In this document: piece by piece, positions 114 through 32,422 of the stretch
How the letters are laid out: each line of letters begins with the position of its first letter
Position numbering within the stretch: position 1 is the stretch's first letter
Source: Bugula neritina
Taxonomy: Eukaryota > Animalia > Bryozoa
Assembly (NCBI GenBank): GCA_964035545.1
Contig: CAXIUT010000106.1
Coordinates: forward strand, 1 to 32,422
Length of the DNA: 32,422 nucleotides
Direction of reading: 5' to 3'
Position numbers and translations under genes: made by a program
The notes under the pieces: model-generated
What the model was told of the DNA's origin: nothing
Seen by the model: the letters and a program-made list of their open reading frames with translations, nothing else
Database searches by the model: none

Positions 114-497
114 TTCTTCTCTTAAGATATTGTCTTCAATGTTGGTTGAATGTTTTTCTTAGAAAAAAATGGTGTTTTCATTCATTTTCTCCATTTATGA
201 ATTAACTAATTTAAGTATTCGCATAACAAGAAAATTAACAATAAATTTATGATCATTTCTGATTAATAATTAACGAAAAAGAATAAATAACTTAGTTGAT
301 TTACCTTTAAAAGAATCGATTATTTAGTTTGAAATGAACACAATATGATACTTGATTTAGTAATAAATAATAAATAATAATAAAATTAATATGAATTACA
401 ATCTATCAATTTAGTTCAAGAGAGTTTATGAATTAACTGTATTTATTGCTACTGAATGTAAGATATTATTCATTTTATTTATTCAGGATATTAAGAT

Positions 498-1046
498 ATG
501 AGTAGAGCACACCAAAAATCTAAATAGACTATTAAAGTCGTTGCTACATCTGGAAAGGGCCCTTCTAGCCTCCCCTGGAAAGAGAGAATTCATCCCGATG
601 AATATCAAATTCTTCTCAGCACCTTCGAACTCTTTGATAGTGATCGATCAGGAACCATTGACCCAGAAGAAATTCATAAAATTATGGAAGAGCTTGGAGA
701 CTCACGCAAAGACACTCTTATCTTCACCATGATCGACGCACTCAGATATAAAAATAAACCCATTACTTTTGAAGAATTTGTTGATCTTGTATCTCCTCCC
801 GTTGGTGACGTCAAAACAAAAGACGGATTGAGAACCATTTTCAGACATCTTGATAAGGACCACGATGACTACATCAATTATGATTAATTGAAGAAGCTAG
901 CTAGACTTGCTGGAGATTCTATTAATGACGAAGAAATTTTGGAAACTCTTCATTCAATTTTCATCAACTATAAGACAGCCACCAACGAAGGACTTCACTT
1001 CGAAGAGTTTTATTCTCTTGTCAGCAATTATTATAAAAAGCATTGA
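498..1046 (+). CDS. Centrin/caltractin-like EF-hand Ca2+-binding protein
   Basis: ATG 498 to TGA 1046, no intron. EF loops FELFDSDRSGTIDPEE and FRHLDKDHDDYINYD-E(TAA); the TAA falls on loop position 12, which is normally Glu. Confidence 0.85.
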
Positions 1047-2427: not shown

Positions 2428-3315
2428 TCAATTCATATATTTATGAGTATTTTGACTTTGATTTGGATTATTATTCTAGATTGTAGGTATAATAGCCATC
2501 GGTCTTCTCATCATTTGAATATTGTTATAGATTGATTGTGCTCTTTGCTAGCTAATTTCTTAAAAGGGATCGAAATGAGGTTCGTCAACATTGCACCACT
2601 GATTCTCAGGATCAGGTACATTATCGATCTTTTTCAGGAATTGTCTAGTATTATTGCCCGTAACTGATATAAAAATATGAAATCCAAAGAAACATAAAAG
2701 AGGCAATCCTAGAACTGCTCCAATTACTGATACAACTACGATGATGGCAGTTTGATTGATATCTTCATCTGATTTCTTAACGATAAAGACAACTGTATTG
2801 ATTATTGCCATAAGAACTGAAAGAAAGGTAAATCCTACGAACATAACAAAATACCGATAATTTCTTTTCCCGATACAATTACCTACAACTCCACAGTGAT
2901 GATCGAAATTTTAGACACAATTTTGGCATGATGAGCAATGGCTAGCTCTAGGTGGTCGATATATATGGCAAGTTTAGCAAAATTTTGCCTCATCTCTCCT
3001 TTATTACTAAAGAAAGATTTTAAATTTCTATCTGTTGTGATCGAGAAAAGGTCTGCGAGGAATAATACCAGGATCGGTGCAATTGGTCAGAAACATGAAT
3101 ATTTGCATGATGACAATGCATATATACAACAGAATTGGTAAAGCAGGAGTAACTTCCCAAGTAGTTCCAACTATGAAGATTGAAAAAGGAATGAGTATTC
3201 CAAGGAGACATATGTATATATAGATTATTCCTCCTAATTATCTTGGAGGTCCTGAAATACAACAGCCACAGCAGAACCGATTATTTCCAGGCCAAACTTC
3301 GTGAAGATAAGGCAT
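2428..3315 (-). CDS. DHHC palmitoyltransferase (Erf2/ZDHHC9/14/18-like)
   Basis: MPYLHEVWPGNNRFCCGCCISGP...TDPGIIPR...[45 protein letters not shown], with hydrophobic segments. Intronless, 295 aa. Confidence 0.93.
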
Positions 3316-3799: not shown

Positions 3800-4588
3800 T
3801 CATAACTCTGTCTTCTCTTCAGATATTTTTTATCCCTTCCTATTTTATCCTATCTCGTTCAAGTCTGAGAGTCTTTTAAAAATTCCATGATATTCTAAGG
3901 ATTCTTAATCTATTTGACCTTTCATTATCTTTTTAACCTCTTCAAATTATTTTTCACTCATCAAAAGCAGCTATCTTCTGACAAGCCAAAGATATGATTT
4001 ATCTTAAGGATATTATGAATGAATTCCTTTATACAGGACCATCTAAATTAAAATAATTCTTACATTAAGACCAGGAACTAAAGGAAGAAGCTCATTAAGA
4101 TCTACTATTGATCCATTTTTTATGTTTTAGTTCAAGAAAGTGCTCAAAGTGAATCCGTTTTAAGGCGCATATTCAGTTACTACAAAACTTATTGACAAGG
4201 ATAGACCTCGATGTTTCCAGGAAGAATTGCTTTTCTCATCAAGTTAGTACTCAATTTGCATTTCTAATACTTATTGAGTTAGGTCTGCAATTCTATGCTG
4301 CGGGGGATATTTGAAAGAAAATTTAGTTCCTTTATACTTATGTTCAGACCCTGAACCACTCAAAATAAGAGTTGATATATCCCCATGAAAAAATGTTCCA
4401 TTTGATTGATGAATAATCGTAATAGGACTCTATTTATTTTTAATGATAAATGAGAAGGCATTGTTAGGTTTGATAGGCAAGGAGGTGAGAGAGATGGGTT
4501 CGGGGATAGTTTATTTCTTGCAGACAGAAGAGGTAGCGATAATGAGTTGTCCTATTAGGAGAGTGACTAATAGTAGAATACCTTTCAT
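3800..4588 (-). CDS. Secretory-pathway alpha-carbonic-anhydrase-like protein, probably acatalytic, with C-terminal KTEL
   Basis: Signal peptide MKGILLLVTLLIGQLIIA. Alpha-CA-like motifs in the expected order: YKGTKFSFKYPPQH, LEMQIEY, VDLNELLP, LYKG...YLWLV. One probable 21-nt intron; ends EKTEL*. Confidence 0.62.
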
Positions 4589-6456: not shown

Positions 6457-6567
6457 GGGGTTGGGGTTGGGGTTGGGGTTGGGGTTGGGGTTGGGGTTGG
6501 GGTTGGGGTTGGGGTTGGGGTTGGGGTTGGGGTTGGGGTTGGGGTTGGGGTTGGGGTTGGGGTTGGG
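6457..6567. repeat. Internal (TTGGGG)n telomeric block, right-end orientation
   Basis: About 18 perfect repeats, ending TTGGG directly against an open coding frame. Confidence 0.95.
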
Positions 6568-10402: not shown

Positions 10403-11060
10403 ATGAATTCTTTGCCGACAAATATACAATTCTACCTGAAACGCTATCAATAAAAAATGAAAGGTATATCTCGATTAAACAAGGATCGAGTGAATTAGCT
10501 TTGAATTCAATTAGACAGAGCATCTAGCAGTTCAATAAGTAGAGATGTTAAAATATTAAATTGAGAAATATTGAAATAGAACCATATGAAAATGATAAAG
10601 GAATATAGTATTCACTATTATACTTGATAAAAATTAAAGGAAGAAAAGTACTTTATCTATTATCAAGAATACCTACTATCAAAACAGAATTCTTAGCTTT
10701 TATCTTTTTGTTTTTGATGGTTTTCCCAAAGAACCTCCTTAAATTATAGCTGGAAATCTTTTCGATTCAGTTAAAAAATAAGAAATAAGATTTATGCATA
10801 TCAATGTGGCAGAGAGCGGTCAGTTTTGTACAAAAACAAACCAATAAAATGGCTAATACTTTAAGGGAACAACTTTAAAGGATATTTTAGTTGAGTTATA
10901 GAATACAATATATGAGCCAAACATAGCAAGTTCTTACAATAATATCCTTTTTGATGCGTTTAATGCTCAAGCAGGCAATCAATAATACTACCAACTCCTT
11001 AATAAGCAGGCTCGGTTGCTTTAAGAAGATTATTCATCAGATGAAGATGATGATTATTGA
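10403..11060 (+). CDS. Divergent ubiquitin-conjugating enzyme E2
   Basis: After 20-nt introns 10464-10483 and 10648-10667: IKGRKNTYYQNR...DGFPKEPP...FMHINVAESGQFC (HxN motif plus catalytic Cys)...TLKDILVELENTIYEPN, then an acidic tail. Confidence 0.8.
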
Positions 11061-11198
11061 GTATTAAAATGTTTAAATCAAAGTATTTCTTTTAAACAGC
11101 CCATTATTTTCTTATCTTTTTAGTTAATATTTCATTTAATATTGTATTGCCAGGATAAATTGCTGAAAAAATAACATTGATGTTCGATAATACTCAGA

Positions 11199-11349
11199 TC
11201 AATATTGAATTCTAAATGAACAAGACCTCTCAGAATATAAAATAGAACTTAAGAATCTTCTTAAATCATAGAATATATCATACATATGTTCACTGTCATT
11301 TAATGAATATAATTTAGAAATCGAATTGTAACGCTTAGATTATTCGAAT
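11199..11349 (+). promoter_or_regulatory. Conserved upstream region of secreted-peptide gene copy 1
   Basis: Aligns by eye with the upstream regions of copies 2-5 (TCAATATTGA, TCTCAGAA, AATCAATAGAA-like, GTTCACTG, TTATTCGAAT). Confidence 0.6.
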
Positions 11350-11667
11350 GGGAAAATTTGCTACACGATTCTTTTAGTAGCCTGCCCACGAAGCTCCCTT
11401 CATGCTGAATTATTGTAAACTAATGAATATTTGTTAGTTAATCTTAATTTATAACCAGTTCGTGTATCTTAACCCTAACTCCCATCTCTAATTATATGTC
11501 CTCCTCCACTTCCTCCAATATAATGCGAATAAAACTACCTCAATACTCATCTTGCAGTTCTTCTATTTGAATGTTTTACCCTCCTAAAGAATGTGTGGCA
11601 GAAGAGGATATGATATGGAGGAAGAAGATGTAGATGTGGAAGAAGAAGATGTGGGAAAAAATGTTGA
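11350..11667 (+). pseudogene. Secreted Pro/Cys/Arg-rich peptide family, copy 1 (degenerate)
   Basis: GGG replaces the family ATG after TATTCGAAT. The signal region is degraded (KICYTILLVACPRSSLHAELLETNE), and the RCGRRRCGKKC* tail is out of frame. Confidence 0.7.
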
Positions 11668-11964
11668 TATTAATTTCATTTACTCATTTAAATAAACTTT
11701 AGTATTTTTTTTCATTGATAAGATCTTAATGGAGAACCATCATTTATCTTCTAAAGTTTACAAATAGTTTATTTTTGTCCATTTCTTGGTAAAAAATTCA
11801 AAAGAATATGGTATTAAGCTTTCCATTTAAATTTTTTAGTCCAAATGATGAACAAATATGAAATAAAAGAAATAAAATAGTTTATTTAAGATAGCTAGTG
11901 ATAAAACAATTGAATTTTCAGGTAAGGCCTTACTGAAAAGTAACAGTGATCTTCAATACTAAAA

Positions 11965-12129
11965 TCAATATTGAATTTTAAATGAGCACAATCTTTCAGA
12001 AGATAAATAAAAATAGAACTTAAAACCTTTCTATATCAATAGAAAATATAATCAAATATGTTCACTGAAGTTTAGTGAATATAACTATAAATCGAACATC
12101 GAATTTTAGAAAAATATAATTATTCGAAT
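11965..12129 (+). promoter_or_regulatory. Conserved upstream region of copy 2
   Basis: Palindrome TCAATATTGA (11965-11974), inverted repeat TTCACT-N7-AGTGAA (12061-12079) and TATAAAT about 45 nt before the ATG. Confidence 0.6.
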
Positions 12130-12654
12130 ATGAAAGTTTGCTACACAATTCTTTTAGCAGCTTGCCTACTCAGCTGTCTTCATGCTGAAGTATTGTAAAC
12201 CAACGAACATTTTTGGGGTGGATCTAATCACCTAAGTAATCCATCCATACCTCAACCTAGTCGTACATCTTAACCTGAGCCTCATCCAGATTGTAGATAT
12301 CAACCAGTACCTCAACCAAGTCGTACATCTGAGCCTGAACCTCCACCTCGCCCAACTAAATGTCGACCCAGATATCGTCCAAAGCATTGCCGACCCAATC
12401 CTCGTCCAAATTACTGTCGACCCAATCCTCGTCCAAAGCATTGTCGACCCAATCCTCGTCCAAAGCATTGTCGACCCAATCCTCGTCCAAGGCATTGTCG
12501 ACCCAATCCTCGTCGAACTGTTTGTCCAACCAGACCCAGAAGTTATACTCATACTACATCAAGAAACAGAGGTCAAAGATCTCGATCTCATTACAATAGA
12601 GGAGGAAGAAGAAGAAACAGTTATTCAGGAAGGAGAAGAAGAAGATATTACTGA
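12130..12654 (+). CDS. Secreted Pro/Cys/Arg-rich precursor, copy 2 (174 aa; CRPNPRPKH-type repeats, Arg-rich tail)
   Basis: MKVCYTILLAACLLSCLHA-EVLETNEH-FWGG, two PQPSRTSEPEP units, about six 27-nt CRPNPRPKH-like units, ending GGRRRNSYSGRRRRRYY*. Confidence 0.88.
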
Positions 12655-13066
12655 TTTCATTAGACTACATTTTAATATATATTCGTAAGGTTAGAGTATC
12701 AATAAGATTTTATGGGTTATAATGGTAATATGTATCAACATTATGGTTATTTATTTTAGATTTTTTTTTTATAAAGCATCAAAGGACATATGGTTTAAGT
12801 GATCTTGATAAATATTCATAAAATGTATCAAAGAAAAATCTTAATTCGCTTTTAAACAATGGTTAACGAGAAATTCTTGAGTTTTTAAAGTTAATAAATT
12901 TAAAATTCAACTTGTAAATCGAAAGATAAAATCATGAGAATCCAAAGAAGTCTTTGAGTCCTTTAGCACTTCCTAAAATAGAAAGAGCAGTTGATGTTTT
13001 ATCTTTTTTCTATAGTCTAGGAGGTAAGACCTTACTGAAAAGTAACAGTGATTTTCAATACTAAAA

Positions 13067-13230
13067 TCAATATTGAATTTTAAATGAGCACAATCTCTCA
13101 GAAGATAAATAAAAATAGAACTTAAAACCTTTCTAAATCAATAGAAGATATAATCAAATATGTTCACTGAAGTTTAGTGAATAAAATTATAAATAGAACA
13201 TCGAATTTAGAAGGTTATATTTATTCGAAT
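13067..13230 (+). promoter_or_regulatory. Conserved upstream region of copy 3
   Basis: TCAATATTGA at 13067, TTCACT-N7-AGTGAA at 13163-13181, then TATAAATAGAACATC. Confidence 0.6.
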
Positions 13231-13740
13231 ATGAAAGTTTGCTACTCGATTCTCATAGTAGCTTGCTTACTCAGCTGCCTTCATGCTGAAGTATTGTAAA
13301 CCAACGAACATTATTGGGGTGGTTCTAATTGGTGTAAATATCCAAAAAGACCTCCTCCAACATGTCCTCCACCACCACCGCCTCCACCTCCTCCAACATG
13401 TCCTCCACCACCTCCAACGTGTCCTCCACCACCACCGCCTCCACCTCCTCCAACATGTCCTCCTCCTCCACCACCCCCTCCACCACCACCACCACCACCT
13501 CCAACATGCCCTCCTCCACCACCTCCAATATGCCCTCCTCCTCCACCGCATCCAACAGTATGTCCTTATGTTTATCGACCAAAGTTACCAAGATTATCTC
13601 TTTTCAAATCAAGAGGCTGCTCTTCATACGGTAGAATGGGAAGATATTGCAAAGGTAGATGTAGAGGAGGAAGAAGATGCTGCAAAAGTTACGGTAGAAG
13701 AAGAAACTGCTGCACAGGATATGGAAGAAGATATTACTGA
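13231..13740 (+). CDS. Secreted Pro/Cys/Arg-rich precursor, copy 3 (169 aa; polyproline-TC repeats, Cys/Arg/Gly tail)
   Basis: MKVCYSILIVACLLSCLHA-EVLETNEH-YWGG, repeated PPP..PTC units, ending GRYCKGRCRGGRRCCKSYGRRRNCCTGYGRRYY*. Confidence 0.88.
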
Positions 13741-13891
13741 TTTCATTAGACTATATTTTAATATATATTCGTAAGGTTAGAGTATCAATAAGATTTTTAT
13801 GGGTTATAATGGTAATATGTATCAACATTATGGTTATTTATTTTAGAATTTTTTTTTATAAAGCATCAAAGGACATATGGTTTAAGTGATC

Positions 13892-13926
13892 TTGGGGTTG
13901 GGGTTGGGGTTGGGGTTGGGGTTGGG
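13892..13926. repeat. Internal (TTGGGG)n block
   Basis: About 6 repeats. Positions 13895-13926 replace exactly 32 nt that are present in the duplicate at 12808-12839. Confidence 0.95.
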
Positions 13927-13959
13927 CTTAATTCGCTTTTAAACAATGGTTAACGAGAA

Positions 13960-14720
13960 ATTCTTGAGTTTTTAAAGTTAATAAATTTAAAATTCAACTT
14001 GTAAATCGAAAGATAAAATCATGAGAATCCAAAGAAGTCTTTGAGTCCTTTAGCACTTCCTAAAATAGAAAGAGCAGTTGATGTTTTATCTTTTTTCTAT
14101 AGTCTAGGAGGTAAATTAACTACATCTACAGTTTCTAGTATGTTATTTATTGATTTTTGTTAGAAAAATATTTCTTAAATAATAATTGCCAGTTGTTAAT
14201 TACAATTCTTTATATTTTTAGGTTTTAATAGTATATAGTCATACAGGTAGATCACATAATTTTTCTTTTCGATATAAATAAATGATACTTTGTCCAAAAG
14301 TAGTAAAAATATCAGTTATTTTAAGGTTATATAATTTATTTATTCATATGTCCTTTAGTATAGAATCTTTGGCAGTGTTTTGAATTTGAAAAATCCATAT
14401 TATCTCGCTAGTATGGTGTCTATTGGAGAATTCTTTTTAAATTAAAGGATATTTTAGATTTATTTAGGAGGAGGGATTTGTTATTTTTTAAAAGTCGAAG
14501 TCTACTTAAAGGTTTTATTTATTGAAAAAACAGATAAAATATTTATAAACTTAATTTAGACAACAAGAACAAGAAAAAAAGATTTAGAAAAAAAGTTACT
14601 TGAATATTTGTCTTAGTTGATTCTGTTCTCAGTACCTAAGAAGATATCTTGTCTGATTATATATATTTTTTTTGTAACAGGATAAATAAATGTCACCTTA
14701 AAAAGATTTTGAAATAATCA
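13960..14720 (-). pseudogene. Diverged paralog of the gene at 17599-18420 (its 3' end is also copied at ~12875-13027)
   Basis: Shared blocks such as INNILET...VNLPP.LEK..KTST.L...SAKGLK. A 1-nt insertion relative to the intact gene leads to an early TGA in both duplicate copies. Confidence 0.65.
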
Positions 14721-14723
14721 ATT

Positions 14724-14794
14724 TTGGGGTTGGGGTTGGGGTTGGGGTTGGGGTTGGGGTTGGGGTTGGGGTTGGGTTGGGGTTGGGGTTGGGT
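14724..14794. repeat. Internal (TTGGGG)n block
   Basis: About 12 repeats, one of them a TTGGG variant. Lies between the two duplicated cassettes. Confidence 0.95.
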
Positions 14795-14799
14795 AAAGT

Positions 14800-15345
14800 T
14801 TTAATATCTCTTCAAATATGAATTTAGAGTCTATAAAGATGTAGAATTAGTAAAATGTACCAAGGTAGAGAGTAATTTAAAAGTTTTAACAATTGAAAGT
14901 TTTTTAAAAAAAGAATAGCTTTCAAAAGAGAGAGGAAAATGACAACCAGAGCCAATATAATTTAGAAGAAAACAGAATAAAACTTCAGAAACATTAAGAA
15001 ACTAATAGTATTAATGGATATCTAAAATAAATTGTTTAAATATCATTTTATATCGAAAACAGTAATGGTAGATAAATCAAGTTGGGAATAGCTTCTATCA
15101 ATGTAGCAAAGAATGGTTAGTTTTGTACAAAATCAATCAGTAAAATAAATCAGTAAAATTACTAAGGAACATAATCTTGAAAGATTTTAATTGAATTTAT
15201 AAAAACAGCAATTTCTACAGTAATATACTCTTTGATGTGTTTAATGCTCAAGCAGACAATCAGTATACTTACTAATTCCTCAAAAAGCATATCCAATTAC
15301 TTTAAGAAATTATTTATCAGATAAAGATGAAGATAATTATTAAAT
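14800..15345 (+). pseudogene. Degenerate copy of the E2 gene at 10403-11060
   Basis: Clear nucleotide similarity (TATCAATGT.GCA.AGA..GGT.AGTTTTGTACAAAA; TTTGATG.GTTTAATGCTCAAGCAG.CAATCA), with deletions, frameshifts and loss of the stop codon. Confidence 0.78.
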
Positions 15346-15662
15346 ATTAAAATAATAAAATATTGATAATGCATCAATTAAAATAAGTCTTTAAAACAAC
15401 CCATAATTTTGCTTTCTTTTTAATTTAATTATGAATCATATGAAAAAATTGGAACAACATGCTGTCCGAAAGTTACATTAATATACTATACTCACATCAA
15501 TATTGCACCGAAAATTAAACGCCATCTTGTCAGAGGACACATAAAACTGAATAACCTTCTTTCAATTAATAGAACTTATAATGAATATGTTGGACTGAAA
15601 TCTAGTTAATATAGTTATAAATAGAACATCTAATTTAGAACACTTGATATTATTATTCGAAT

Positions 15663-16563
15663 ATGAAAGCTTGTTACTTGATTCTTTTAGCAGCTTGCCT
15701 ACTCTGCTGTCTTCATGCTGAAGTATTGTAAACCAACTAACATTGTTGGGCTGGTCCTTCAAGGAGTATTGTCAAAACCTGTCCTCCGATCAGACCTCCA
15801 ATTGTTTGTCCTCCTGCACCAAAAATTTTAGGATCATCATCTTTTGATTTTAATCCTTTGATTTGTTATCCTTGTGGTCGAAGAGGAAAATGTTGCAAAC
15901 CAGGAATATGCCCCATAGGTGGAATCTTTAACAGAGGAATATTTACCAAAGAGGAATATGCTGCAGAGGAAGAGGGTGTGGAAGAAGAGGTAAAGGATGT
16001 GGAAGAAGAGGGTGTGGAAGAAGAGGGTGTGGAAGAAGAGGTAAAGGATGTGGAAGAAGAGGGTGTGGAAGAAGAGGGTGTGGAAGAAGAGGTAAAGGAT
16101 GATGGAAGAAGAGGGTGTGGAAGAAGAGGGTGTGGAAGAAGAGGTAAAGGATGTGGAAGAAGAGGGTGTGGGAAGAAGAGGGTGTGGAAGAAGAGGTTAA
16201 AGGATGTGGAAGGAAGAGGGTGTGGAAGGAAGAGGGTGTGGAAGAAGAGGGTGTGGAAGAAGAGGGTGTGGAAGAAGAGGTCAAGGATGTGGAAGAAGAG
16301 GTGTGGAAGAAGAGGTAAAGGATGGTGGAAGAAGAGGTAAAAGGATTATGCAAATAGGCAAAGGATTGAGAAAAATAAAAAAAGGATTCGAGAAAAATCT
16401 CAAGAGGACTATGTTGCAGAGGTAGAAGATGTGGAAGAAGAGGATGTGGAAGAAGAGGATGGTGGAAAGAAGAGGTAAAGGATGTGGAAGAAGAGGGTGT
16501 GCGAAAGAGGTAAAGGATGTGGAAGAAGAGGTGTGGAAGAAGAGGTGTGGAAGAAGAGGTAAA
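15663..16563 (+). CDS. Secreted Pro/Cys/Arg-rich precursor, copy 4 with expanded (GCGRR)/(GKGCGRR) array; frame broken in this assembly
   Basis: MKACYLILLAACLLCCLHA-EVLETNEH-CWAG...CPPIRPPIVCPP...CYPCGRRGKCCKPGICP, then 15/21-nt repeats with several indels. The 3' end is uncertain (assembly error or pseudogene). Confidence 0.7.
15968..16563 (+). repeat. Purine-rich minisatellite GGGTGTGGAAGAAGA / GGTAAAGGATGTGGAAGAAGA
   Basis: Mixed 15- and 21-nt tandem units are directly visible. Confidence 0.9.
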
Positions 16564-16950
16564 GCTTCAGCTCATTAGTATGTCCTCCTTAGTCCTTCTG
16601 ATCTTCCCATTTAACTGCATTTAAATACTATTAAATACTTTTTTGTTATGTAAATATTCTAAAATCCTTAATCAATATTTAAAATTTAATTCTTTTCTAA
16701 AAAGATAATAGCCTGATCAAAACTGCTAAGTTCTTTAACCGTGAATATCCGAATCACATTACAGTCCTAAATCATCTTGACCATTCGTAATACCCATTCT
16801 AACATGAATGCAATTTTCTCAGAAGACACATAAAATTTAAGAACCTTCTTTAAATCAATAGAAGAATACATCTAATAGTTCACTGAAGTAGTTAGATACT
16901 AATTATAAATAGAACATCGCATTTAGAAGTTTATAATTATTCATTCTACT

Positions 16951-17359
16951 ATGAAAGTTGGCTATTTTATTCTTTTAGCAGCTTGCCTACTCAGCTGTCT
17001 TCATGCTGAAGTATTGTAAACCAACTAACATTGTTGGGCTGCTCCTAGATGGGGAGGTATTATCAAAAATTGTCGTTTTCCAATTAGGCCTCCAACTATA
17101 TGTCGTCCAATAAGACCAACGATATGTCCTCCTGCTTTACCAATAAGACTACCTAAATTGAAATGCACAAGTCAAAGATATTATTCTCCTTGGGGGTAGA
17201 GGAGGCAGATATTGTGGAAACAGAGGGAGATATTGTGGAAACAGAGGAAGATATTGTGGAAACAGAGGGAGATATTGTGGAGGCAGAAGAAGATGTTACA
17301 AAAACAGATCTAGAGGAAAAAGACATTGCAAAGGATACAGAAGAAACAGATATTGCTGA
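16951..17359 (+). CDS. Secreted Pro/Cys/Arg-rich precursor, copy 5 ((GRYCGNR)n repeats); one apparent +1 indel in the G5 run at 17192-17196
   Basis: MKVGYFILLAACLLSCLHA-EVLETNEH-CWAA...CRFPIRPPTICRPIRPTICPP. Removing one G gives GRGGRYCGNRGRYCGNR...RRNRYC*, whose end (AGATATTGCTGATTTCA) matches copies 2 and 3. Confidence 0.8.
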
Positions 17360-17598
17360 TTTCACTTTACTGCATTATGAATAATTTTTATACTTTTTAT
17401 TAAAAATTAAAGTTAAACGAAAAAAAAATAATTATGAATTTACAATGAATCGACTGTTCTATAAATTATTAAAATACCAATCCTATCCTTACTCTTCACA
17501 AAAAACATCAAGAAATATGCTATTTAAGTTATTTTGATAAAAAATCATGAAAAATTATTTATATTATTAAAAATAAAAACTCAATAAAGATTTTATTT

Positions 17599-18420
17599 TC
17601 ATTAAAAAATCATTAATAGTAGATGCTTGAGTTTTTGAAGTTAATAAATATAGAAATATTTTAGTTTGTCTTATGTATGCATATTCAAGATAAAATCATG
17701 AGAATCCGAAGAAGTTTTGAGTCCTTTAGCGCTTTTTGAATTGGCAAGAGTAGTTGATGTTTTGTTTGTTTTTTACAGTTTAGGAGGTAAGTTAACATCG
17801 TTTAGGGTTTCTAGTATGTTATTGATTGTTTTTTGTTGCTTTTCTAGCCGCTTATTGACAATATCTTAAAAGATTGAATGCTTTTAGATAAATGTACTTT
17901 CCAACTCGTTGATATTCTGATTAATCTTTTCTTGAAAAATATTATCTCTTGACTTATTTTCTTTCGTAAGTTATGTGGAATCTAGAATATCTGTGCTTTC
18001 TGGACTGATTTCTTTCGCCTTTTAATGCAAGTAGTTTATAGTTCTTTTGATTGAGGGAAAATCAAAGAGTTGTTAGTCTTCAACGATACTCTCATCTGAG
18101 TATTATTTAGGAAGAGTTTATACTTTTGTGATCATTATTCTTTCAGCTTATCAATTTACTCCCAAACATTCGAGATATTCAATTGAGTTTATCATAGTAC
18201 TGTTTGAACGTTTTTTATTGGGTCGAAGAAAGAAGAAAAGAAATTTCTTCAATAATACTTGTCACTTATTAATTACTATTTTTTGTATTTTGATGTTTCA
18301 ATGGGATAGTACCTAATTCATTGATAGATTGTATTTCTTGTTTTTAGTTTTTATTTGAAGATTGAGTGTTAGAAAAGAGAGGTGATTGTAGCTTAATTAA
18401 GAAGTGTGTTTTCTTTATTC
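17599..18420 (-). CDS. Hypothetical protein (5' exon structure unresolved)
   Basis: About 180 codons open from ~18140 to TGA at 17601-17599, with a candidate 20-nt intron upstream. Start coordinate is approximate. Confidence 0.55.
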
Positions 18421-18562: not shown

Positions 18563-19937
18563 ATGGGAAACTAAGTGAATAGGCACTAGCAAAATAAGAA
18601 GCAAGGAGGCGAACAAGCCAAGAAAAAACCTATTCCTCCTCCTCCTAGAGTAGGAAGAAAGAAAAAAGGAAAAGGTATCGATGCAGCTACAAAACTTCCA
18701 GCAAGGTAAACATCATCTTATGTAGTGACTCCTATCACTAAATGCCGTTTGAGACAACTGAAACTTGAAAGGATCAAAGACTACCTCCTGATGGAAGAAG
18801 AATTTGTTGAACACTATCAGAAAGAATAAAAAGCCAAACCTGAAGAAGAAAATGTAATATCTATATGACTCAGGAATAATTCAAGAAAATCTAACAACTT
18901 AGAGGACTACCAATGAACGTTGGTACTCTTTAATAATTTGTTGACGAAGATCATTGTATTGTCTCATCAACAATGGGGCCTGAATATTATGTGCCTATCA
19001 TGTCTTTCGTTGATAAAGATCAATTAGAACCAAATAGTTCGATTCTACTCAATCACAGAGGCATGTCTATTGTCGGTATTATGCAAGACGATGTTGATCC
19101 TTTACTCAATGTGATGAAAGTGGAAAAAGCACCTCTTTAAAGCTATGCAGATATCGGTGGTCTTGAGACTCAAATTCAATAGATCAAAGAAGCTGTTGAG
19201 TTACCTCTTACTCATCCTGAAGTCTATTAAGATATGGGTATTAAACCTCCAAAAGGAGTTATTCTTTATGGAGAACCAGGAACAGGAAAAACTCTTTTGG
19301 CTAAAGCTGTCGCTAACTAGACTTCAGCAACCTTTTTGAGAGTCGTAGGATCTGAATTGATTCAAAAATACTTGGGAGATGGACCTAAATTAGTCAGATA
19401 ACTTTTCAAAACCGCTCAGGAGCATTCTCCTTCAATTATCTTCATTGATTAAATCGATGCTATTGGTACAAAGAGATATGATTCGAACTCTGGAGGATAA
19501 AAATAAGTGCAAAGAACTATGTTGGAACTTCTGAATCAACTTGACGGATTCGATACTCATGCTGAAGTTAAAGTAATCATGGCTACTAACAAAATTGATA
19601 CTTTAGACCCTGCTCTAATTCGTCCTGGAAGAATAGATAGAAAGATTGAATTTCCTGTTCCAGATTTAAAAACCAAGCATAAAATCTTCCAAATTCATAC
19701 TTCTAAAATGAATCTTAACTAAGATGTAAAAATACTTCTATTTAGGTAACTGGAGGATAATTAATTCAAACAAAGGACGACCTTTCTGGAGCTGATATAA
19801 AAGCAATGTGCACATAGGCTGGTTTGATAGCTTTGCGAGAGAGGAGAATGAAGGTAACAAAGGAAGACTTTGATAAAGCCAAAGAGAAAGTGCTATACTT
19901 GAAGAAAGGAGATATACCATAGGGATTGTATATTTGA
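18563..19937 (+). CDS. RPT2: 26S proteasome AAA-ATPase subunit Rpt2 (PSMC1/S4)
   Basis: [76 protein letters not shown] and C-terminal PEGLYI*. Introns 18854-18873 and 19726-19745, plus an anomalous one at 18706-18725. Confidence 0.97.
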
Positions 19938-32259: not shown

Positions 32260-32319
32260 GTTATTACATACAATATTATAAACCTATTCTAATTATGATA
32301 TTAAATGAAAGTAAAGGGA

Positions 32320-32422
32320 TTGGGGTTGGGGTTGGGGTTGGGGTTGGGGTTGGGGTTGGGGTTGGGGTTGGGGTTGGGGTTGGGGTTGGGGTTGGGGTTG
32401 GGGGGGTTGGGGTTGGGGTTGG
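32320..32422. repeat. Right telomere (TTGGGG)n
   Basis: T2G4 array at the contig end, with one expanded G run. Confidence 0.97.

Follow-up and report, generated by a model that had tools for sequence, protein, structure and literature searches.

A Single-Locus Tandem Gene Family in a Ciliate with a Near-Invariant Leader and Divergent Cationic Repeat Bodies

The general pattern of a conserved leader joined to a hypervariable secreted body, either of low complexity or rich in Cys, is already known. The pheromone precursors of Euplotes have a conserved pre-pro segment and a variable mature part. Pro/Cys structural proteins, such as the IgG3 hinge repeats, the SPRR/LCE and keratin-associated proteins and the cnidarian minicollagens, form disulfide-crosslinked rods of the polyproline type. 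The Cys-rich peptide family MgCRP-I carries a conserved signal followed by a hypervariable mature region (PMC4558851). Among adhesive proteins, Mfp-3 is secreted, basic, small, highly polymorphic and rich in Gly, Asn and Tyr, and Mfp-6 is a Cys/Tyr-rich interfacial adhesive (PMC5132118). Here we describe a tandem family of five units on contig CAXIUT010000106.1 of assembly GCA_964035545.1, which is deposited under the name Bugula neritina. The window analyzed is the complete contig (32,422 nucleotides (nt)) within a 216-Mb, 321-contig assembly. Judged from its sequence, the five-unit locus is a real protein-coding, lineage-restricted family confined to a single place in the genome, and it appears to be previously undescribed.

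The five units are arranged in tandem on the forward strand (Table 1). Aligned regions of ~200 nt upstream of the units have a mean column identity of 78% (80-94% pairwise) and a conserved TATAAAT-type box ~45 nt before the ATG. The units have an N-terminus of 27 codons in common, within which MKVCYxILLAACLLSCLHA-EVLETNEH is invariant or nearly so across copies 2-5; these copies then continue with FWGG, YWGG, CWAG or CWAA. All copies have an in-frame TAA at codon 23. A 27-nt core (codons 17-25) has zero differences, synonymous or not, among the four paralogs of copies 2-5, and over the leader the proportion of nonsynonymous differences (pN) is 0.05-0.08 versus 0.11-0.31 for synonymous differences (pS). 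A previous sequence-only reading of this DNA had proposed five genes with a common upstream region, this leader and its EVLETNEH segment, and an in-frame TAA specifying Glu. The upstream region, the leader, the TAA and the tandem arrangement all hold. However, copy 1 in its present form does not amount to a gene, and only copies 2 and 3 are continuous open reading frames.

That reading had also suggested a leader search of the organism's own genome, which recovers only the five units. A profile of the 22-residue leader matches just these places in 216 Mb (E 2.6e-13 to 8e-6), and the next match has an E of 2.2. A degenerate pattern for the leader DNA gives 5 matches in the assembly versus 0 in the control. 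The leader DNA, the leader profile, the promoter, the 3' flank, the N-terminal part of copy 5, the tail of copy 3 and an RRRRYY-stop pattern likewise have own-genome matches only at this locus. The leader and the unit pattern are far beyond chance expectation.

The family is invisible under the standard code because the genome uses TAA and TAG as Glu codons. The host is, by its coding signature, a ciliate with TGA as sole stop codon, corresponding to NCBI translation table 30, the peritrich code. A Walker B motif has the form hhhhDE. The gene at ~18563-19827 of the window encodes 26S proteasome regulatory subunit 4 (E 1.5e-33 versus PDB chains when TGA is taken as the only stop), whose conserved blocks are broken by single TAA or TAG codons; the TAA at 19450-19452 occupies the Walker B Glu (...IIFID-TAA-IDAIG). 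Within the family, codon 26 is TAA in some paralogs and GAA in others, and the internal 30-nt repeat of copy 2 has TAA in one repeat copy versus GAG in the other. Because TAA stands at the Walker B Glu and alternates with GAA and GAG at paralogous codons, the table 30 translation presupposed by the sequence-only reading is well founded. Telomere repeats cap both ends of the contig, with (CCCCAA)n at 6-113 and (GGGGTT)n at 32313-32422, and therefore the contig looks like a whole macronuclear chromosome of 32 kb. Tiny introns evidently exist in this genome: a 20-nt GTAAT...CAG intron is predicted at 18855-18874 of the proteasome gene, and its removal restores the frame between ...PEEEN and EEFKKIEQLRG. 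Its length fits the narrow range of intron sizes described in peritrichs (PMC13685798). A second 20-mer, GTAA...TAG at 18707-18726 of the same gene, would break the frame if spliced.

The bodies that follow the leader are built from the repeat types that the sequence-only reading had listed: a 27-nt CRPNPRPKH repeat (x5.7), polyPro-TC, GCGRR/GKGCGRR with periods of 15/21/51 nt, and a 21-nt GRYCGNR repeat (x4.4). At the DNA level the repeat bodies of the five units are unrelated. We refer to copies 1-5 as g1-g5. The read evidence on their state consists of assembled contigs of public short-read runs, and such contigs cannot show transcripts.

Copy g2 contains a 30-nt repeat (x3.3; 12249-12347) and then the CRPNPRPKH array (12361-12514; 90% matches), followed by an Arg/Ser/Gly/Tyr-rich tail that ends RRRRRYY; a short-read contig over 12182-12444 has 1 mismatch. 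Copy g3 has polyPro-Thr-Cys repeats over 13341-13554, and its Arg/Gly/Cys/Tyr tail finishes with GRRYY; short-read contigs over 13235-13392 and 13592-13689 have 0 mismatches. The sole break in g5 is a G5 run at 17192-17196, which leaves the Pro/Cys half in frame 0 and the GRYCGNR array and tail in frame +1. Short-read contigs that span 17012-17236, from three public runs in two studies, all lack one letter at 17192. Because one G is missing in all three runs, the break is read as a homopolymer assembly error, and g5 is intact in the read sets. Copies g2, g3 and g5 stop at a homologous TGA that is followed by TTTCA.

Copy g4 has a normal leader and Pro/Cys part, and its ~600-nt array needs at least 9 shifts of ±1 to hold the GCGRR frame. 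The array has periods of 15, 36 and 51 nt in its first half and of 14, 35 and 53 nt in its second; each difference is a matter of single bases within a run of G or A, and aligning a short-read contig that covers 16311-16457 to the assembly takes 4 gap letters. The frame breaks of g4 are therefore probably homopolymer assembly errors of the same kind as in g5, which is as yet unproven. Copy g1 is, by its sequence, a pseudogene. It has GGG where the other copies carry ATG (in the homologous frame), and its leader reads ...VACPRSSLHAELLETNEY, with the hydrophobic core broken by Pro-Arg-Ser-Ser (…VACPRSSLHA). Its body, ~74% identical to part of the g4 array, holds CPPPLPP and GCGRR/RRCRCGRRRCGKKC remnants in different frames that only frame changes would join. 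Thus, two copies are intact in the assembly, one is intact by reads, one is uncertain and one is a pseudogene.

Tiny introns were also considered as a cause of the frame breaks; this was rejected for g5, in which the reads show a 1-nt difference. It is plausible that g2 and g3 are intronless, as had been proposed for all five. A 25-nt GTAAT...TAG intron candidate in g2 (12237-12261) was discarded, as its splicing would abolish the frame of the conserved C-terminus. Across the g2 array (12182-12802, + strand) the +1 frame is open as well, with 206 codons that include VDPILVQ repeats, and could be reached by splicing 12237-12261; the conserved C-terminus and stop argue against this. Apparent joints of paralog leaders to the g1 body in read contigs are explained by a query stretch that starts at 11420, inside g1, so that the g1 leader aligned to its paralogs. 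Single-base homopolymer errors in the assembly, as judged from the public short-read contigs, occur at 17192-17196, 16311-16457, 11434 and 12707.

Table 1. Features of the tandem locus and its surroundings (positions in the window; copies 1-5 are g1-g5 in the text)
Feature	Position	Strand	Basis or remarks
Tail of upstream neighbor	10799..11166	+	duplicated at ~15096-15468
Copy 1 upstream region, promoter-like	11167..11349	+	77% identical to copy-3 upstream region
Copy 1, decayed (putative pseudogene)	11350..11667	+	three-frame translation; leader profile E 8e-6
Copy 2 upstream region with TATAAAT-type box	11929..12129	+	94% identical to copy-3 upstream region
Copy 2, intact open reading frame, 174 codons, TGA end	12130..12654	+	translation; short-read contig support
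Copy 2 3' untranslated region and downstream flank	12655..13027	+	paralogous to 13741-14114 (copy 3); distal part to 17602-17791 (past copy 5)
Copy 3 upstream region	13031..13230	+	upstream alignment
Copy 3, intact open reading frame, 169 codons	13231..13740	+	translation; short-read contig support
Internal (GGGGTT)n tract just 3' of copy 3	13894..13926	+	replaces exactly 32 nt of copy-2 flank (12808-12839)
Second internal (GGGGTT)n tract, between cluster halves	14724..14795	+	oriented like the right-end telomere
Copy 4 upstream region	15469..15662	+	73% identical to copy-3 upstream region
Copy 4	15663..16601	+	leader, CPPIRPPIVCPPAP block, Cys cluster, long GCGRR/GKGCGRR array 15969-16564
Copy 5 upstream region	16817..16950	+	81% identical to copy-3 upstream region
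Copy 5	16951..17360	+	leader, Pro/Cys block to 17196; GRYCGNR x4 array and Arg/Cys/Tyr tail 17195-17357; TGA 17358-17360

Under table 30 the window contains many spurious open reading frames of at least 100 codons, and with one stop codon open frames alone are weak evidence of coding. The argument that the family is real and coding is instead based on repeat periods that are multiples of 3, on 3-nt indels, on a leader pN lower than pS, and on the conserved start, stop, promoter and 3' untranslated region. All clean repeat periods are multiples of 3 (27 and 30 in g2; 12/21/36/57 in g3; 15/36/51 in g4; 21 in g5). Indels that distinguish the assembly from the reads measure 3 nt in the intact coding bodies (12366 and 13696, the latter an in-frame deletion in g3 found in all four runs); in the decayed g1 they measure 6 nt (11621) or form a close -1/-2 pair (11584, 11592) that nets -3, and outside the genes they measure 1, 1, 1 and 7 nt. 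Because the differing bodies of g2, g3 and g5 recur in short-read contigs from two independent studies, at no more than 1 mismatch, the diversity of the bodies is not an assembly artifact.

The cluster bears the marks of a block duplication and of a later tandem duplication. In a blastn self-comparison, 10799-11431 matches 15096-15744 (67.5% over 683 columns), a block that comprises the tail of the upstream neighbor together with the promoter and leader of g1 in one place and of g4 in the other. This marks a block duplication in which [neighbor tail - g1 - g2/g3] corresponds to [tail fragment - g4 - g5]. The downstream flanks of g2 and g3 match the flank after g5 (17602-17837). Given the block duplication and the matching flanks, g1 and g4, both of the GCGRR type, are taken as positional counterparts, as are g2, g3 and g5, which also have a Tyr-rich end and the same 3' untranslated region in common.

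Copies g2 and g3 represent, on this comparison, a later tandem duplication of 1.1 kb. Their 5' flank and leader are 92.9% identical (11920-12228 versus 13022-13329), and their last ~16 codons and 3' flank are near-identical apart from one 32-nt swap, whereas no alignment is possible over the central ~375 nt. The one element recognizably common to the bodies is a short ...TVCP... junction. Each body consists of its own young tandem repeats, and thus the bodies diverge through repeat birth and turnover. The likeness of the flanks has probably been kept by recent duplication or gene conversion. The contrast between a near-invariant leader in copies 2-5 and bodies of g2 and g3 that defy alignment upholds the view, put forward in the sequence-only reading, of a conserved leader with diverging cationic bodies.

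The N-terminus has the form of a signal peptide, again as that reading had supposed. MK is followed by 15 hydrophobic residues (residues 3-17; mean Kyte-Doolittle value 2.4-2.8) and by L-H-A before E, with Ala at -1 and Leu at -3. The leader is therefore predicted to be a cleavable signal peptide, cut after L-H-A and before E, and its h-region is too short for a membrane anchor. A protamine-like nuclear basic protein was rejected because of the hydrophobic leader. By contrast, the interpretation of EVLETNEH as an acidic propiece is not supported: the segment has just 8 residues (3 Glu) versus a net charge of +18 to +30 in the mature protein, and no processing site follows it. We instead take EVLETNEH to be the conserved start of the mature protein, where it could serve as a sorting or docking tag.

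The predicted mature proteins range from 117 to about 300 amino acids (aa). Mature g2 has 155 aa, an isoelectric point (pI) of 11.6 and a net charge of +30, with 22% Arg and 21% Pro; the last seven of its 8 Cys are exactly 9 residues apart. Mature g3 has 150 aa, a pI of 9.6 and a net charge of +18, with 39% Pro and 10% Cys (15 Cys, an odd number), and in its Pro block a single Cys occurs every 7-17 residues. The two pieces of mature g5 sum to 117 aa, a net charge of +27 and 12 Cys, and the g5 tail consists of 31% Arg, 24% Gly, 13% Tyr, 13% Cys and 9% Asn. AlphaFold2 predicts no helices, sheets or globular fold for the mature g3 piece (predicted template modeling score (pTM) 0.14). The polyPro segment is modeled with confidence as extended (predicted local distance difference test (pLDDT) 80-88), and the Arg/Gly/Cys tail is scored as disordered (40-52).

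Homology searches are in keeping with the earlier impression that the family has no recognizable homolog. Scanning five pieces against Pfam-A (hmmscan, E up to 1) gave 0 families, and the Penaeidin profile (PF05927) is thus not matched by any piece. An exhaustive HMMER search of the mature g3 piece against 1.84 billion protein representatives found no homolog and only low-complexity polyPro matches, ten of which (E 6e-7 or weaker) were inspected and dismissed as such. No homolog was found when the g2 piece and both g5 pieces were compared with 5.8 billion proteins in a word-indexed search; an ESM Atlas feature search gave no usable match, and a PDB sequence search gave nothing meaningful. Two degenerate leader patterns, one that requires TAA and one that accepts any Glu codon, had 0 matches in JGI metagenomes. 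Proteins of relatives, if predicted under the standard code, would end at TAA or TAG, so that absence from protein databases is weak evidence.

The family resembles several described systems in part. As with penaeidins and the arasin-type crustacean antimicrobial peptides, its members combine a signal peptide, a Pro/Arg-rich part and a Cys-containing cationic part, and both are multigene and polymorphic. However, the penaeidin comparison made in the sequence-only reading is an analogy only. Penaeidins are ~50-70 aa long and have a Cys-free Pro-rich domain followed by a separate six-Cys domain of fixed spacing, whereas in the present family Cys recurs periodically inside the Pro repeats (8, 15 and 12 Cys in g2, g3 and g5), and the C-terminal block is a tandem Arg/Gly/Tyr/Cys repeat. 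Bac5/Bac7, PR-39 and apidaecin, with the precursor logic of cathelicidins, provide a second comparison, based on the high Arg and Pro content, the conserved N-terminal part of the precursor and the variable cationic part. Pro-Arg-Pro-type motifs are found in g2 (RPNPRPKH-C x6) and are absent from g3-g5. Unlike cathelicidin-type precursors, the family has neither a cathelin-like nor a long acidic prodomain, and unlike the short, Cys-free proline-rich antimicrobial peptides its far longer products (150-155 aa) have Cys in each repeat and no spacer or processing motif between units.

Leader-conserved small-peptide families are comparable in their near-invariant leader, fast-diverging mature part and gene-family expansion, yet they are folded and keep a fixed Cys framework, whereas Cys number and spacing vary here with repeat count and no fold is predicted. 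Like the family, the IgG3 hinge, SPRR/LCE and keratin-associated proteins and the minicollagens place Cys at regular intervals, contain Gly/Tyr/Cys-rich blocks, lie in tandem gene clusters and evolve through changes in repeat number. They differ in that there is no homology and no counterpart of the extreme Arg content or of the ciliate-specific leader. The g3 modules have the form Thr-Cys-(Pro)5-15 and contain no SPPPP, in contrast to the Ser-(Pro)4 of extensins and other hydroxyproline-rich glycoproteins. In composition the tails of g5 and g3 fit Mfp-3 and Mfp-6, without homology, and the g2 tail has no Cys. The family departs from the Mfps in its use of Arg over Lys, with Arg far above that of any Mfp, and Mfp-3 has neither repeats nor a polyPro rod.

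By analogy, we tentatively favor a role in a disulfide-crosslinked extracellular matrix or adhesive over an antimicrobial one, with a probability of roughly 0.4. This preference reflects the fact that the products are too long and too Pro-rich for typical antimicrobial peptides, that regular single Cys residues on polyproline rods are the design of interchain-crosslinked hinges and of cornified and keratin-associated proteins, and that the Arg/Gly/Asn/Tyr/Cys end blocks recall the composition of Mfp-3 and Mfp-6. Each protein would comprise a signal peptide, the mature N-terminus EVLETNEH-x-W, a Pro rod with periodic single Cys, and a cationic Arg/Gly/Tyr/Cys tail. Once exported, the proteins would form an extracellular matrix or glue that is polycationic, laddered by disulfides and possibly crosslinked through Tyr, for which the stalk sheath, holdfast, cyst wall or lorica are candidate sites. 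The Pro/Cys rods would provide interchain crosslinks, and the tails would provide cohesion and binding to anionic surfaces or polymers. The bodies would diversify as short tandem repeats expand and turn over in frame, while promoter, leader, C-terminal end and 3' flank stay similar. A review of peritrichs treats the extracellular stalk sheath, fibrillar matrix and batonnets as structural without molecular identity (PMC6189993). The bolder proposal is that the family provides the first molecules to be identified in the extracellular structures by which peritrichs attach (stalk sheath, batonnets, holdfast cement or cyst wall) and represents a new class of polycationic, disulfide-laddered polyproline/arginine cement, whose repeat cassettes are replaced so rapidly that the bodies of sister genes can no longer be aligned even though their flanks are 93-99% identical; we regard this as distinctly doubtful.

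Several points count against a matrix or adhesive role. The likeness to adhesives is compositional only, without homology, and a conserved leader with a hypervariable cationic body is equally typical of host-defense peptides. The sessile or stalked habit of the host is suggested by its genetic code alone, and the assembly has only two demonstrably intact copies. Among the public runs searched, no run on record as RNA contains the locus. Small runs presumed to be RNA, which carry the species label of the run that matches the locus best, contain almost none of the locus words, which is weak evidence against very high expression there. The runs that do contain the locus are probably DNA, because their contig sets include very long contigs.

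A somewhat unlikely alternative is that the products are cationic host-defense or prey-killing peptides or fragments, sent to food vacuoles or the medium, whose mature parts diversify through an arms race. The net charge of +18 to +30 and pI of 9.6-11.6 would suit such a function, as would a host that is probably a bacterivore, the RPNPRPKH motifs of g2, which are of the type seen in proline-rich antimicrobial peptides, and the near-identical flanks of g2 and g3 around unalignable bodies; the conserved signal with hypervariable mature part has a parallel in MgCRP-I (PMC4558851). However, chains of 117 to about 300 aa with no spacers or defined processing sites between units are difficult to reconcile with it, every Pro repeat contains Cys whereas classical proline-rich antimicrobial peptides are Cys-free, and the 39% Pro of g3, with its P10-P15 runs, is not an antimicrobial design. 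Furthermore, the 8-residue acidic segment is too small to neutralize the cationic body as antimicrobial propieces do, and neither Penaeidin nor any other antimicrobial family in Pfam is matched. The invariance of the mature N-terminus, whose coding core is identical in four paralogs over 27 nt, might instead point to another secretory role, either as a granule polycation or condensing agent with EVLETNEH-x-W as a sorting or processing tag, or as a secreted recognition or mating signal. Polycations are natural partners of acidic granule proteins, and the pheromone precursors of Euplotes follow the same plan of conserved pre-pro segment and variable mature part. Pheromones, however, are allelic, small and folded, in contrast to these low-complexity tandem paralogs without a predicted fold, and no homology to granule proteins was found (Pfam, HMMER), nor does anything in the data point to granules; we consider this reading improbable. 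Least probable of all is a largely nonfunctional, decaying or unexpressed locus in which repeats evolve neutrally and long frames are common because TGA is the only stop. The clear decay of g1, the many breaks of g4 as assembled, the many spurious open frames and the lack of an RNA run holding the locus fit this explanation. It does not account for repeat periods and coding-region indels that are multiples of 3, a leader pN lower than pS, or the start, stop, promoter and 3' untranslated region conserved among g2, g3 and g5; moreover, three independent read sets show the break in g5 to be an error of the assembly, and those of g4 are single-base differences in G or A runs, the same error type.

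If expressed, these genes would represent a secreted family that keeps its regulatory, targeting and terminal parts constant and rebuilds its body from new in-frame repeats in very short evolutionary time. They would provide a first molecular handle either on the extracellular materials of sessile ciliates (stalk, glue and cyst wall, of interest for biofouling and wet adhesives) or on ciliate antibacterial peptide defenses. Such families are invisible to standard-code annotation, and the homopolymer errors of this assembly can give intact genes a broken appearance. Frameshifts that seem to occur elsewhere in this genome should not be called pseudogenes before a check against reads.

The window has three internal (GGGGTT)n tracts (6457-6564, 13894-13926 and 14724-14795), all oriented like the right-end telomere. 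A 30-nt telomere pattern also lies inside other contigs of the assembly, where overlapping matches number 5850 forward and 3093 reverse. Short-read contigs tend to stop at these tracts. The tracts are possibly alternative telomere-addition sites that would give rise to nested minichromosomes, or consensus artifacts derived from telomere-bearing reads. Widespread internal telomere-addition sites have been reported for Blepharisma (PMC13685798). Around the tract just 3' of g3, the 38 nt before and 31 nt after are identical to the g2 flank, and the identity runs on for 188 nt downstream. Such a length-preserving swap is odd for de novo telomere addition and hints at a polishing or consensus artifact or an unusual repair event.

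Contig depth, summed for two runs over 11420-17415, is ~10-fold higher to the left of the 13894 tract (g1-g3) than over 14020-15219, and it rises again over g4 and g5. Sub-chromosome copy number, amplification bias or transcription could produce this step, among which contigs cannot discriminate. Uneven depth was rejected as an RNA signature and is uninterpretable, because coverage between g1, g2 and g3 is as deep as over the genes themselves. Runs labeled as three organisms, from three studies, contain near-identical pieces of the locus, and many small runs under the species label of the run that matches it best have none. In some of these samples the ciliate may be an associate or a contaminant; alternatively, a single species may have been given different labels. 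Elsewhere on the same chromosome, at 456-1046 (+), 2428-3315 (-) and 3800-4588 (-), the neighbors include an EF-hand protein (…DSDRSGTIDPEEI…), a DHHC-type Cys-rich membrane protein and an open reading frame with a signal-like N-terminus.

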